From: Fonticula alba ATCC 38817
Lineage: Eukaryota > Protista > Nucleariida
Assembly (NCBI GenBank): GCA_000388065.2
Contig: KB932222.1
DNA length: 5,826 nucleotides
Direction: 5' to 3' (one strand)
Shown: positions 1 through 5,313 of the stretch, piece by piece
Layout of the letters: the number at the start of each line of letters is the position of its first letter
Numbering within the stretch: position 1 is the first letter of the stretch
Notes under the pieces: generated by a model
The model's database searches: none
Told to the model about the DNA's origin: nothing
Seen by the model: the letters and a program-made list of their open reading frames with translations, nothing else
Translations under genes and position numbers: made by a program

Positions 1-11
1 GCTGTTTATCT

Positions 12-2150
12 CTACTCAAAGCAAATATAGGGCCGGGCAGCGTAGGCATCATTAATCGTCAGGCCATCGACAGAAGCACATAATCCGAACAAGGATGCGC
101 CGGGATGTGCCACCATCGCCTGCTCCACTTGAAAGGCCCGTGCGGCCGGGTGTCGCATGTAGTCCGGAGTCGTAAACCGGACGCCCTGTCGAGCAGCGTG
201 CGCTTGCAGCGAATTCACCACCTGCGGCAGGGCGCAGCCCAGATCCGCCGCCACCCGGTGCAGCACCGGCCGCGGGTATTTCCCCTCCACCGCCGCCAGC
301 AGGTCGGCCAGCTTCTCCTCCGGCACGTACATCCCCCCCGGCCCGGACCCGGCCCCCGGGCCCAGCGCCAGGAAGAAGTACTCCGGCGCAAACCGGTACA
401 GCATGCCGAACAGCACATCCGGATGCTGGCCCATATCCGCGGCCAGCTCCCGCACCGTGAAGCGCATCCGCCGGCCGGACGGGTGCACCTGCTTCGCCAG
501 CCGCCGCAGCCGCCGGATGTCCTCATCCGCCAGGGCGTACTTCCGGAATGACCGTCGCGAATCCCAAAAGCCCTCGGGCCATCCGAAGGAGGGCATCGTA
601 TTTAACAAAGTCATCTTGGGGATGCCCAAATATTCACGCATTTCCCTCTCTGCCAGCATGGGCCGCAGTCCAGCCAGACCTCGGGCCTCGGCTTCCAGGT
701 CCCGACTCAGCCGCAGCGCCAACAGCTGCACATGCGTCCCCGGGCCGGACCCATGCACCTGCGGATCGAAGTATACCAGCCGATTGACCGCCGATAGCCG
801 GACCAGCGCATGGGTCCCTTCGCCCCCCGGCGACCCTTCACCCGGGGGGGCCTGGTGCACCGGCGAAGTGGCCGGCAGGAAGCGCCGCGTGTACTCGCCC
901 AGCGTCAGCCGGCCCAAACCCCCCGGCCGGGTAAGTTGCCGCACGGGCTGCCCGTCGGAATACGGTAGCACCACCCCCGGCTCGTAGTACCTGATGTACC
1001 AGCGGAGTCGATCGGCCGGTATCGTCAACTGCTTGGCCATGTCCCGGAGACTGTGCCGGCGTTCTTGCAACAGCTCTCGCATCCGGGCCACCTTCTCCGC
1101 CGGCAACTCCCCCCGCAGATGGACGATATACTCCGGGCATAGGCCCGGTCCGTGCAGGGTGATCGACGGAGGAGTCACACCTGACGATTCGTGGATCGCC
1201 CACAGCGAGGGCACCGGCACCTTCTGCAGCCCTGCCACCAATGCCCCTCGCAGGGCTTCCATCTTTGGGGCTGGCAAATGCGACACCATCACATCCCCAT
1301 GCTCCGGGAAGTGCCTGTTGATGGCCTTAGTCAAGGATACCAAATCGGTCGAAAGGAGCAAGGCCATTGCCCCCCTCGACAGGGGGGGATCCACGGTCAG
1401 CAGGTGCCCCAGCCGGCCGATGCACATGCTCCGATCCCACAATGGTTTGGCCAGGATCTCCGGCGCATGCTCCTCCAGCAGTTCCTCCACTTGCTTCAAC
1501 GGCAAGCGCATCAGTCGCGGCAGCACCAGCGGCGGCAGCACCGGCGGATCCCGCCGGACCAGGTCCATCAGATCCTCGAAGACCGCATGCCCCGGGCCCA
1601 CCCCGGCCAGGGGAACATGCCGCGATCGCCGGGCCGGCGCAATGCCAAACTCCCGGCCATAATGCCCCAGCAGACTCTGCACCGATGCCCGGTCCATCCC
1701 CAGCAACCGGCCCATCGGGCCCAACTCTGCCAGGGGCCGATCTGCCCGGGGGTCCCCGACAAGCCGCAGGAACAGCCGGAAGTGCGCCACATCGTCGAAC
1801 CCCTGCGGCAGGGGCTCCTCCCCGGCCTCGATGGCCCGGCAGAGCCGCGCCCCGGCGCACTCGGCGTCGTAATTCGCAAACTTGGCGGACGTGGCCACTT
1901 TGGTGCTCGTGCTTTTGGCGGCCGAGGAGAATGCCCGCATATGGACCAGCGACATGGCCCTGGGAGCCATGACCTGCGACGCTGTCGCATACACGCCGCC
2001 GTTGGTGACCAGGGGGGACGCCGGGCCCCGCGCGGCCGGTGTATGACCCCCGGCCAGAGGCCAGCCCCGCCGGGCCGCCGCCGCCGCCGTCGTCAATGCC
2101 GGCGAGCCCCACGCACGCAGGGCTCGCACGGCCGTCCTTGAAACCAACAT
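12..2150 (-). CDS. Hypothetical protein (~712 aa), probably mitochondrion-targeted, with multiple degenerate helix-turn-helix-like repeats
   Basis: Long open frame ending at TAG (12-14). The ORF-track start at 2312 reads through a CT/GA microsatellite (LFLFLFLSLSL), so the second Met (MLVSRTAVRALRAW, ATG at 2150) is the more plausible start. The first 94 residues from that Met contain no D/E and are R/A/S/T-rich, ending near ...MRAFSS. No named family recognised. Confidence 0.85.
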   Translation of the reverse strand: MLVSRTAVRALRAWGSPALTTAAAAARRGWPLAGGHTPAARGPASPLVTNGGVYATASQVMAPRAMSLVHMRAFSSAAKSTSTKVATSAKFANYDAECAGARLCRAIEAGEEPLPQGFDDVAHFRLFLRLVGDPRADRPLAELGPMGRLLGMDRASVQSLLGHYGREFGIAPARRSRHVPLAGVGPGHAVFEDLMDLVRRDPPVLPPLVLPRLMRLPLKQVEELLEEHAPEILAKPLWDRSMCIGRLGHLLTVDPPLSRGAMALLLSTDLVSLTKAINRHFPEHGDVMVSHLPAPKMEALRGALVAGLQKVPVPSLWAIHESSGVTPPSITLHGPGLCPEYIVHLRGELPAEKVARMRELLQERRHSLRDMAKQLTIPADRLRWYIRYYEPGVVLPYSDGQPVRQLTRPGGLGRLTLGEYTRRFLPATSPVHQAPPGEGSPGGEGTHALVRLSAVNRLVYFDPQVHGSGPGTHVQLLALRLSRDLEAEARGLAGLRPMLAEREMREYLGIPKMTLLNTMPSFGWPEGFWDSRRSFRKYALADEDIRRLRRLAKQVHPSGRRMRFTVRELAADMGQHPDVLFGMLYRFAPEYFFLALGPGAGSGPGGMYVPEEKLADLLAAVEGKYPRPVLHRVAADLGCALPQVVNSLQAHAARQGVRFTTPDYMRHPAARAFQVEQAMVAHPGASLFGLCASVDGLTINDAYAARPYICFE

Positions 2151-2208
2151 ACGATGAGAGGGGCCGAGGGAGAAAGCGAGAAGAAAAGAGAGGCGCGTGC
2201 ACACGCAC

Positions 2209-2265
2209 AGAGAGAGAGAGAGAGAGAGAAAGAGAAAGAGAAAGAGAAAGAGAAAGAGAGAGAGA
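2209..2265. repeat. (AG)n/(AGAAAG)n microsatellite
   Basis: Directly visible purine repeat, pyrimidine-rich on the CDS strand, 60-115 nt upstream of the ATG at 2150. Confidence 0.95.
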
Positions 2266-2417
2266 TGCTTAGTCTGCCCTGAATGTTCGCATAGAATGAC
2301 CCTCTCCCTCAAGATTCATCGGCGGGAGGAGATGGCAAGTCACCGGGGACCCATAATTCCTCCGCCAAAAAAGAGCTCATCCGTCGGTAGTCCTCCGAGC
2401 ACTTGACGATCCAGATC

Positions 2418-2523
2418 TGTAGTAGGGCTCACACGGGTTAAGACCAAGTCAAGCGAGTGAGGCTTGACGATGTAGCAGGATTCACACGGGTTAAGCCTAA
2501 GTCAAGTGAGTGAGGCTCGACAA
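2418..2523. repeat. 53-bp tandem duplication of the element's 3'-terminal module
   Basis: 2418-2470 and 2471-2523 match at 45/53 positions (manual count). The single-copy equivalent in copy D is 4137-4189. Confidence 0.93.
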
Positions 2524-2815
2524 AGGGTATCAGTGTGATCTGCCATCCGGTTAGTGGCCTCTTGCCTTGAATAGAGGGAACAACATACCTACCAGCGGTT
2601 CACGGTCGTCCGTTTCCAGAGGGGGAGTCAGTAACTCGGCTAGAAGCGAGTGAGTGGCAAGCGAAATAGAAAGAAACTCGAATAAATAAAAGGGGTTCGA
2701 GAGGAGGCCTCAGAACCGGTGTTCGTCAGCTCGACCGGTGCTCCGGCTATACTTTCGTGTTCTCTTCGACACACAGCTGCTAAGGCTTTCACTATCGGGA
2801 GGTTCCCAACGGGAA

Positions 2816-2842
2816 CCCCCCCCCCCCCCCCCCCCTCCCCCC
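2816..2842. repeat. Poly-C tract (C20-T-C6), an expanded G-run of copy A
   Basis: Directly visible; homologous to GGGGG at 3751-3755 in copy C. Confidence 0.9.
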
Positions 2843-3087
2843 ACCTTTTGACCTTTGGGCTTGGTCAAGGGATGGATCTGAGAACCCCGGGGTCGGGCTC
2901 GCGCCCACTCGCGTATCTCCCCATGCTCGGTCAGCGCCTGCACCGCTCAACCTCGCAGGGCCGCCTGGGACGTTGTCCTACCCCGCATTCTCTATCAAAA
3001 GAATGCTATTGGAACTTCATCCCTCCTGAAACGCAGCGATGTGATCCCTGGGTAGGATCGGGCAACGCGTGGGTGAACGGTGCCGTG

Positions 3088-3110
3088 TATATATATATAT
3101 ATATATATAT
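3088..3110. repeat. (TA)11 microsatellite
   Basis: Directly visible in the spacer between head-to-head copies A and B. Confidence 0.95.
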
Positions 3111-3322
3111 GGGCATACAAGGGAGAATATACAACAGGCAGCCATGCAGGCGCGTCGGTGGACAGAGCAAGGGCCGCAGCCTTATATACCGAGGCTGTGG
3201 CACTCACACAAGCGTTGGCATGACTAAGGATCACATGCCGAGTCACGAGCGGGGCATTTCACCTCCCTGGTTTAGCATGTGAGGAAAGGACTCTCACGTG
3301 TCGCCTCAATGATAGTTTACAA

Positions 3323-3522
3323 GGGGAATCCACTACACCTTCGTACAGGGCCGACGCTATCGTGGCCCGCAGGAAAGGATGGAGACACGCGCACAGGTGG
3401 GGTTCTCAAATCCGCCCCCCCTCCCCCCACTTTGATTTGGGGTACGTCGAGGGCGGGGGGGGGGGGGGGACTCCCAAGGGGAGCCTCCGTAGAGTGAGAA
3501 AACCTCGTGTAGTGGTATCCCC
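3323..3522 (+). ncRNA. Putative structured RNA element, copy B (core-only mini-copy closed by its own stem)
   Basis: 3348-3494 aligns with 3664-3780 of copy C (GGGCC..GGCCC hairpin, AGGAAAGGA, GGAGACACGCG, GGGGTTCTCA, CTCCC-N3-GGGAG-CCTCC). Flanks 3323-3338 and 3507-3522 are complementary at 14/16 positions. Confidence 0.45.
3455..3469. repeat. Poly-G tract (G15), an expanded G-run of copy B
   Basis: Directly visible; same homologous position as the poly-C of copy A. Confidence 0.9.
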
Positions 3523-3564
3523 CAATCTCTATAAACCAAGTCACAGGTTGAATTACAAGATCCC

Positions 3565-4132
3565 CACGTGAACGGCCCCGTGGAAGATTATGGCATGCTT
3601 GAATGGCATTCCTCCTCAGGAGGAATGCGGGGTAGATCGACAGCCAGATGGCCGCCGAGTACCGGGCCAGTTCGGTGGCCCAGGAAAGGAGGGAGACACG
3701 CGTGCGCGCGGGGTTCTCAGATCCACCCCACGACCAACCCAAGGTCAAAAGGGGGACTCCCTGCGGGAGCCTCCTGAGAGCGAAGACCTTAGCAGCTATG
3801 ACGATGTTGACTATGTTGACGATGTTGAAGTATACGCTTGTATGCTAAGACAACCTGACAGAGTCTCAGCCCGGCCTGCGAACATCTGTTCTAAGGCTTC
3901 CTCTCGAACCCCTTTTGTTACACGAATTGCTTTCTATTTTGCTCGCCCCGCTAACTCGCCCCTAGGTCGAGTTACCTTGTCTCGTCGCTAGTAATCTCAT
4001 CACCCCTTCTGGTTCGGTACGCCCTCCTTCATGCCCGAGCGGTCCCTAACCAGTAGTAAGATTTCCGGTATAGCTTCCGTCAAAGCTTCACTCCTTTGAC
4101 GTAAGACTGGATCCGTGAGAACCCTGCTACAC
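3565..4132 (+). ncRNA. Putative structured RNA element, copy C (near-full, most divergent in the 3' half)
   Basis: Hairpins 3606-3628, 3664-3681, 3757-3769, 3880-3891 and 3952-3974; long-range helices 3627-3636/3933-3942, 3746-3754/3909-3917 and 3784-3792/3891-3899. Confidence 0.55.
3800..3828. repeat. 9-bp tandem repeat (GACGATGTT/GACTATGTT, about 3 copies) specific to copy C
   Basis: GACGATGTT-GACTATGTT-GACGATGTT-GA is directly visible and is absent from copies A and D. Confidence 0.9.
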
Positions 4133-4149
4133 CTCGTGTAGCAGGGTTC
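4119..4149. repeat. Perfect 14-bp inverted repeat with a 3-nt loop at the tail-to-tail junction of copies C and D
   Basis: GAACCCTGCTACAC-CTC-GTGTAGCAGGGTTC; extends imperfectly to 4111-4157. Confidence 0.95.
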
Positions 4150-4674
4150 ACACGGGTTAAGCCTAAGTCAAGTGAGTGAGGCTTGACGAAGGGTACCAGT
4201 GTGATCTGCCACCCGGTTAGTAACCTCTTGGCATGAAGGAGGGGACATACCAACCAGCGGTTCACGGTCGTCTGTTACCAGATGAGTCAGTAACTCGGCT
4301 TGAGACGAGTTAGTGGCAAGCGAAAATAGAAAAGAACTCGGATGTTAAAAAGGGTTCGAGAGGAAGCCTTAGAACAGGCGTTCGTAGGCCTAACTGGTGC
4401 TTCGGCTATACTTCCGTATACTCTTCGACACACAGCTGCTAAAGCTTTCGCTCTCAGGAGGCTCTCAACGAGAGTCCCCCTTTTTGACCTTTGGGCTCGG
4501 TCAGGGGTTGGAACTGAGAACCCCGCGGCTGGGCCCGCCCACCCGCGTATCTCCGTCCTCGGTCGAGCGTTTATGCCGCTCGGCCTCGGCGGCCACCTGG
4601 CTGTTGTTCTACCCCGCATTCCTCTCCGAGGAATGCTGTTCTGGGATGCTATCATTCCCACGATGTAACACGTG
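4136..4674 (-). ncRNA. Putative structured RNA element, copy D (near-full)
   Basis: Reverse complement aligns with A and C. Hairpins 4616-4636, 4564-4582, 4462-4474, 4372-4383 and 4291-4312; long-range helices 4607-4617/4320-4331, 4478-4485/4347-4354 and 4439-4447/4364-4372. Confidence 0.55.
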
Positions 4675-4681
4675 TGGCAAT

Positions 4682-5313
4682 NNNNNNNNNNNNNNNNNNN
4701 NNNNNNNNNNNNNNNNNNNNNNNNNNNNNNNNNNNNNNNNNNNNNNNNNNNNNNNNNNNNNNNNNNNNNNNNNNNNNNNNNNNNNNNNNNNNNNNNNNNN
4801 NNNNNNNNNNNNNNNNNNNNNNNNNNNNNNNNNNNNNNNNNNNNNNNNNNNNNNNNNNNNNNNNNNNNNNNNNNNNNNNNNNNNNNNNNNNNNNNNNNNN
4901 NNNNNNNNNNNNNNNNNNNNNNNNNNNNNNNNNNNNNNNNNNNNNNNNNNNNNNNNNNNNNNNNNNNNNNNNNNNNNNNNNNNNNNNNNNNNNNNNNNNN
5001 NNNNNNNNNNNNNNNNNNNNNNNNNNNNNNNNNNNNNNNNNNNNNNNNNNNNNNNNNNNNNNNNNNNNNNNNNNNNNNNNNNNNNNNNNNNNNNNNNNNN
5101 NNNNNNNNNNNNNNNNNNNNNNNNNNNNNNNNNNNNNNNNNNNNNNNNNNNNNNNNNNNNNNNNNNNNNNNNNNNNNNNNNNNNNNNNNNNNNNNNNNNN
5201 NNNNNNNNNNNNNNNNNNNNNNNNNNNNNNNNNNNNNNNNNNNNNNNNNNNNNNNNNNNNNNNNNNNNNNNNNNNNNNNNNNNNNNNNNNNNNNNNNNNN
5301 NNNNNNNNNNNNN
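4682..5313. other. Assembly gap (632 N)
   Basis: Run of N; ORFs that span it are artefacts. Confidence 0.99.

Follow-up and report, generated by a model that had tools for sequence, protein, structure and literature searches.

The question raised by the locus analysed here is what kind of sequence is repeated upstream of a scaffold-end gene of Fonticula alba. The window, by which we mean the whole 5,826-nt stretch of DNA that was analysed, is the first 5.8 kb of scaffold KB932222.1 (GCA_000388065.2), and the first-pass annotation had described in it four diverged copies of about 550 nt whose hairpins keep pairing while their sequence changes, proposing either a new non-coding RNA (ncRNA) family or a non-autonomous RNA-based mobile element. 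Our analysis suggested that solo long terminal repeats (LTRs) of a Ty3/Gypsy-like LTR retrotransposon family have piled up in this stretch, inserted beside and into one another upstream of the scaffold-end gene, with a probability of roughly 0.7; the LTR membership is what we infer, because no full-length element was obtained.

The repeats described by the first-pass annotation are real. Self-comparison of the window aligned positions 2471-3010 with 4137-4640 at 78% identity and gave a 1.1-kb inverted pair at 3579-4662. The content of positions 2418-4680, however, is three long copies (A, C and D), one fragment (B) and one 53-nt partial duplicate (A0), all non-coding, and the unit is about 600 to 630 nt long instead of 550 nt, because homology runs about 100 nt beyond the GCATTC...GAATGC hairpin to the CCACTACA end; the intact copy C has 624 nt. 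Further copies were found on two other scaffolds, at L007:9120-9720 and L005:19117-19714, which makes three scaffolds in all (L002 to L008 are labels of the fetched F. alba loci on other scaffolds, and the fetched loci total 125 kb). The pairwise identity was 64% to 82% among the long copies of the window and 57% to 82% with the L005 and L007 copies included. The repeat region is composed of the following features:

2418..2470, plus strand: A0, a tandem duplicate of the first 53 nt of the unit, starting TGTAGTAGGG; 86% identical to 2471-2523 and 91% identical to 4137-4189; model match with E = 1.5e-8.
2471..3026, plus strand: 5' part of copy A, of an old, low-abundance subfamily; model E = 1.4e-146; 82% identical to D.
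3027..3261, no strand assigned: a 235-nt element of unrelated sequence that interrupts copy A, with TG...CA ends (TGAAAC...CATTTCA) and the 5-bp duplication CCTCC at 3022-3026 and 3262-3266.
3267..3337, plus strand: 3' tail of copy A, ending GGGGAATCCACTACA; weak model match at 3250-3338 (E = 0.9), aligned by eye with the tails of C and the L007 copy.
About 3338..3502, minus strand: fragment B, which is an inner segment of an old copy (about columns 360-560 of the alignment); E = 3.3e-9 for 3371-3498.
3503..3507, no strand assigned: left copy of the target-site duplication CCTCG, perfect over 5 bp, flanking C.
3508..4131, minus strand: copy C, complete at 624 nt, of a young, abundant subfamily, 5'-TGTAGCAGGG...CCACTACA-3'; E = 6.6e-162; 72% identical to the L007 copy (L007:9120-9724).
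4132..4136, no strand assigned: right copy of the target-site duplication CCTCG, perfect over 5 bp, flanking C and separating the heads of C and D as a 5-nt spacer.
4137..4680, plus strand: copy D, the first 544 nt of the unit, of the most abundant subfamily; E = 7.1e-165; cut by the assembly gap at 4681-5313.

Fragment B lies directly between the 3' end of A and the duplication of C, and a model search did not find the rest of it to the left of A. Copy A contains a C27 homopolymer at 2816-2842 and B contains a G-run at 3451-3469, the short C-run that follows the CTCCC hairpin having grown to C27 in A and to about 15 to 19 in B. A variant of copy A without 80 nt was also observed, in contigs that join 2683 to 2764 (a genome run at depth 155, and a soil metagenome).

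The earlier statement that no conserved open reading frame (ORF) is shared between the copies held in the copy alignments, in which no ORF common to all copies and no shared frame was found; indels divisible by three number only 1 to 4 of the 11 to 22 per copy pair, and most indels are 1-2 nt long. The repeat unit is therefore non-coding, and a protein-coding repeat was rejected on the same grounds. For the ORFs inside C and D there were no matching proteins on record.

How the unit came to be dispersed is indicated by its ends and by what flanks them. TGTAG forms the 5' end of A0, A, C, D and the L007 copy, and CTACA forms the 3' end of A, C and the L007 copy (the CCACTACA end); the ends of the L005 copy are degenerate. 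The inverted match between the two ends of the unit covers about 5 to 8 nt only, i.e., TGTAG plus a few scattered bases. The loose ends of RNA-library contigs were located exactly at 3508 and 4137, so that further members of the family share these terminal bases and the boundaries are fixed independently. Besides copy C with its perfect duplication, the 235-nt element nested in copy A has a second copy of about 217 nt, 80% identical, near a scaffold end at L002:12941-13157, where it is flanked by TGGGT, and this element is probably a solo LTR of another family; a (TA)11 run is present in the copy in the window and not in the L002 copy. Since the two copies of the 235-nt type carry different 5-bp duplications, the genome hosts this insertion chemistry, and together with C there are three insertions with TG...CA ends and perfect 5-bp duplications, for which the chance is about 1 in 1000 per match. 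TG...CA ends and 5-bp duplications characterise insertion by an integrase, as with Ty3/Gypsy-type LTRs, and TGTAG fits the end pattern TGTNR given for Gypsy LTRs (PMC2836005).

In comparison to solo LTRs of the Ty3/Gypsy group (Metaviridae), the unit is similar in its length of a few hundred nt, its non-coding nature, its TGTNR...CA ends with a short imperfect inverted repeat, the 5-bp target-site duplication of copy C, its nesting, and its subfamilies that differ in age and abundance. The differences are that no parent with gag-pol, a primer-binding site and a polypurine tract was seen in the fetched loci, that two of the three complete copies are without a recognisable duplication, and that covarying hairpins span the whole unit. 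The termini and the 5-bp duplication would look identical if the 620 nt were a self-standing non-autonomous mobile unit that depends on an integrase-type enzyme acting in trans, be it a structured RNA inserted after reverse transcription or cut-and-paste DNA resembling Ginger2/TDD elements, and extensive covarying structure would suit an RNA that is recognised in trans. All six copies are seen solitary, which such a unit would explain, but solitary copies are equally expected of solo LTRs, and the unit lacks what marks terminal-repeat retrotransposons in miniature (TRIMs), namely terminal direct repeats within the unit, a primer-binding site and a polypurine tract. We consider a self-standing unit, the main rival of the solo LTR, unlikely while leaving it some weight; of the earlier proposal of a non-autonomous RNA-based mobile element, the mobile element remains the best reading and the solo LTR is preferred over the self-standing form.

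Ginger2/TDD DNA transposons share with the unit the TGTNR termini and the integrase-type chemistry, and TDD-4 and TDD-5 make 5-bp duplications as well, but Ginger elements have terminal inverted repeats of 40-270 bp and often a transposase ORF (PMC2836005), whereas the inverted ends of the unit are far shorter, and a Ginger/TDD-type DNA transposon is therefore unlikely. A miniature inverted-repeat transposable element or Ginger-type transposon was likewise rejected, the ends having no terminal inverted repeats of tens of bp. TRIMs, retrozymes and short interspersed nuclear elements (SINEs) are similar to the unit in being short, non-coding, abundant and possibly dependent on RNA structure, but the unit differs from TRIMs as described above and from retrozymes in having no hammerhead ribozyme; a SINE was rejected because the unit has no tRNA, 5S or 7SL head and its CCACTACA 3' end is without an A-rich or simple-repeat tail.

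The read depth showed that the copies are subfamilies of very different abundance. Contigs with 0 to 1 differences to C had a depth of about 4,100 to 4,300 in comparison to 80 to 150 for single-copy neighbours (30- to 50-fold). The summed depth, which is not a copy number and was used as an order of magnitude only, was 39,000 to 56,500 over D in the DNA run and 600 to 880 in the RNA-library run, and 58 to 1533 over A. These values suggest that C has tens of near-identical copies and that D has more. Copies of the element adjoin assembly gaps in two scaffolds (L005:18900-19117 and window 4681-5313), which fits a high-copy repeat breaking the assembly.

Abundance differences of 10- to 100-fold between subfamilies are not what would be expected of a gene family for a new structured ncRNA, locally duplicated and dispersed. 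Compensatory changes with a significant consensus structure, the RNA-library contigs over C and D, and the lack of a match to known families could all be taken to favour such genes, but the target-site duplication, the TG...CA ends, the nesting, the truncation and the foreign insertion in one copy speak against them, as do identities of only 57% to 82% with many indels and an equal number of G-U and A-C deviations that favours neither strand. The proposal of a new ncRNA family is thus unsupported, the TGTAG...CTACA ends, the 5-bp duplication, the nesting and the uneven abundance being LTR-type traits, and we regard it as very improbable. It is because of the ends, the target-site duplication, the second element with like chemistry, the age structure and the placement that an integrase-inserted element is favoured over RNA genes. 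With regard to known RNA families, the earlier annotation was borne out: a search of the whole window with Rfam 15 (E <= 1) gave no match to a group I or group II intron, a hammerhead or hepatitis delta virus (HDV) ribozyme, a tRNA, 5S or 7SL, and ARAGORN found no tRNA in the window. The only match, to the Pab91 snoRNA in a C/G homopolymer region, was at chance level (24 bits in comparison to a gathering score of 71, E = 0.34).

Every hairpin that had been listed is present in the alignment, including the double changes. CTCCC/GGGAG was found in B, C and the L007 copy, CTCTC/GAGAG in D and TTCCC/GGGAA in A; GGGCCA/TGGCCC in C is located where D has CGAGCG/CGCTCG; GAAC-N4-GTTC is present with differing loops and GCATTC...GAATGC with varying stem length; and the TAACTCG/CGAGTTA pairing is present with one mismatch in A. 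The RNAalifold consensus of the five-copy alignment was compared with 100 column shuffles per strand, and its energy was -80.8 kcal/mol in comparison to -55.3 +/- 5.6 for the shuffled alignments (z = -4.6), and -79.9 kcal/mol in comparison to -49.6 +/- 5.5 for the reverse complement (z = -5.5). The number of pairs changed on both sides was 22 for the sense and 25 for the antisense strand, in comparison to 3 to 10 when the 3' partners were slid by 1 to 3 columns, and to 12 to 13 +/- 2.5 when the partners were dealt out among the sequences (500 shuffles), the best of the 500 shuffles on the sense strand reaching 22, the same as observed. These statistics come from five sequences in two or three lineages, which gives them limited power, and the signal is consistent. 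The conserved hairpins are real, and their pairing is above chance.

The claim that selection acts on RNA or single-stranded DNA structure instead of coding stands insofar as pairing is conserved in a non-coding unit, but no particular RNA strand is marked. When the helices were defined without wobble pairs, the deviations from Watson-Crick pairing consisted of 22 G-U and 24 A-C cells, therefore no single RNA strand is marked as the selected molecule; the z scores of single-sequence folds of C were -2.0 for one strand and -4.7 for its complement. A bolder reading would make the unit more than an LTR, i.e., a module of a retroelement in which a multi-hairpin RNA fold is under selection from end to end, either as a non-autonomous structured RNA copied and integrated in trans or as an LTR with an unusually large cis-acting fold for self-primed reverse transcription. 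We think it decidedly unlikely; if true, it would mean a recent amplification to hundreds of copies in a genome reported to be almost transposon-free.

The arrangement of C and D bears on a further explanation. The two copies are placed head-to-head with only the 5-bp duplication of C between them, which gives an imperfect palindrome of 2 x 0.6 kb at 68% identity, and C would therefore have integrated exactly at the edge of a pre-existing D. An inverted pair of this size, the location of the window at a scaffold end beside a scaffold-terminal gene family, and the strand symmetry of the structure signal might also be accounted for if recombination had spread palindromic DNA or segmental repeats of scaffold ends (subtelomeres), with the hairpins kept by DNA-level processes, e.g., template switching in palindromes. 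Sharp common boundaries and a precise 5-bp duplication are contrary to this, the L005 copy lies 60-70 kb from its scaffold end, the scaffold ends of paralogues of the neighbouring gene are without the unit, and arms that are only 68% identical are hence not a recent palindrome, so that we see little chance for such an explanation.

Several points weigh against the solo-LTR reading itself. The covarying structure across the whole 620 nt exceeds what is usually described for an LTR. No full-length element with two LTRs, gag-pol, a primer-binding site and a polypurine tract was seen in the 125 kb of fetched loci, and their nine longest unannotated ORFs contained no Pfam domain and no reverse transcriptase or integrase. 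The 5-bp duplication was seen around C, and the 3' flank of D lies inside the assembly gap; matching 5-bp flanks were looked for at A and at the L007 copy and none were found, which counts only as absent positive evidence and is tolerable for old copies or for recombination between elements. The RNA-library contigs cover C and D but may reflect DNA carry-over of a high-copy repeat instead of transcription. An exact scan with the most conserved 20-mer gave five matches to JGI metagenome contigs, which are due to chance, nhmmer found no wider homology, and the exact 20-mer scan of viral contigs gave no match. In the literature searched, no description of F. alba LTR families was found.

Under the solo-LTR reading, a retroviral-type DDE integrase would have inserted reverse-transcribed DNA with a 5-bp staggered cut. 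Solo LTRs arise via recombination between the two LTRs of an element, and such recombination would here have deleted the internal part of each element. The likely order of events is that B and A are old, that D was inserted beside B, and that C was then inserted head-to-head at exactly the 5 bp adjoining the end of D, the compensatory changes of the hairpins presumably having been shaped while the subfamilies were still active. In the genomic RNA of an element, both untranslated ends (5' and 3') consist of LTR sequence, and LTR DNA carries the promoter, so pairing would be selected in active lineages free of coding constraint; pairing needed for transcription, packaging, priming or strand transfer would be kept while the sequence drifts between lineages.

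The gene downstream of the repeat cluster belongs to a family of its own:

15..2150, minus strand: a 712-aa ORF of a Fonticula-only, scaffold-end gene family (probably subtelomeric).

An exact look-up matched this ORF at 100% identity to the protein at bases 12-1955 of scaffold KB932222.1. It belongs to a family of at least eight paralogues with 43% to 85% identity, its paralogues all being named "hypothetical protein H696_..." of Fonticula alba; six of the eight lie either no more than about 8 kb from a scaffold end or on a contig of 1.7 kb, and the five placed near a scaffold end all read toward that end; no telomere repeats were visible at the scaffold ends. Matches of the ORF were weak and confined to the helix-turn-helix (HTH) kind (Pfam HTH_32 at E = 0.003; scores of 0.6 in Atlas), and a PDB relative was not found. 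It is likely to represent a subtelomeric gene family. Immediately upstream of the ORF, at 2209-2265, is an (AGAAAG)n/(GA)n microsatellite. The HTH-repeat ORF was also considered as the internal part of the element and was rejected, six paralogues being without a nearby unit and none having a unit downstream.

In comparison to the upstream regions of the L002 and L003 paralogues, the repeat cluster amounts to about 2.3 kb of extra DNA; the blocks that flank it are about 720 nt apart upstream of the L002 paralogue, and both blocks also flank the L003 upstream region. The cluster begins 268 nt upstream of the ATG of the 712-aa ORF (2418 in comparison to 2150), and the L007 unit is 281 nt upstream of the start codon of its paralogue (L007:9720 in comparison to an ATG at 10001). 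The location of the unit about 270-280 nt 5' of the ATG in two paralogues may reflect a preference for insertion in promoter regions, or chance. Fission yeast Tf1 inserts upstream of Pol II genes, and the unit resembles self-priming LTR retrotransposons of the Tf1/sushi type in this spacing, but self-priming needs sequence just inside the 5' LTR, which solo copies lack.

The summed depth over the 712-aa ORF was 8,000 to 26,000 in comparison to 80 to 150 for single-copy sequence (2012 DNA run; window 1-2184, with D in 3433-4680), and the ratio of depth between D and the ORF was about 3 in the 2012 DNA run and about 0.2 in a soil metagenome and in 'organism B' runs. For the high depth of the ORF and D, either the assembly collapses many copies or the copy number differs between strains. 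Contigs nearly identical to parts of window 1-4680 (0 to 6 differences over 200-400 nt) were observed in metagenomes from soil, sediment, sludge and gut, and also in runs of 2025 that carry the label of another organism; these samples seem to contain Fonticula alba itself or a very close relative.

In general, one candidate for a new structured RNA is removed by the analysis, since the repeat is most likely mobile DNA of an ordinary, LTR-like type. The F. alba assembly has been reported with 0.36% repeats, together with a warning of underestimation (bioRxiv 10.64898/2026.06.24.734286), and the results suggest that at least two subfamilies of the unit, located beside assembly gaps, are far more abundant than the assembly shows. 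The family is a clear example of how LTR hairpins evolve by compensatory change from one retroelement subfamily to another, and such hairpins could help to locate cis-acting signals, in RNA or in DNA, of elements that have been little studied.

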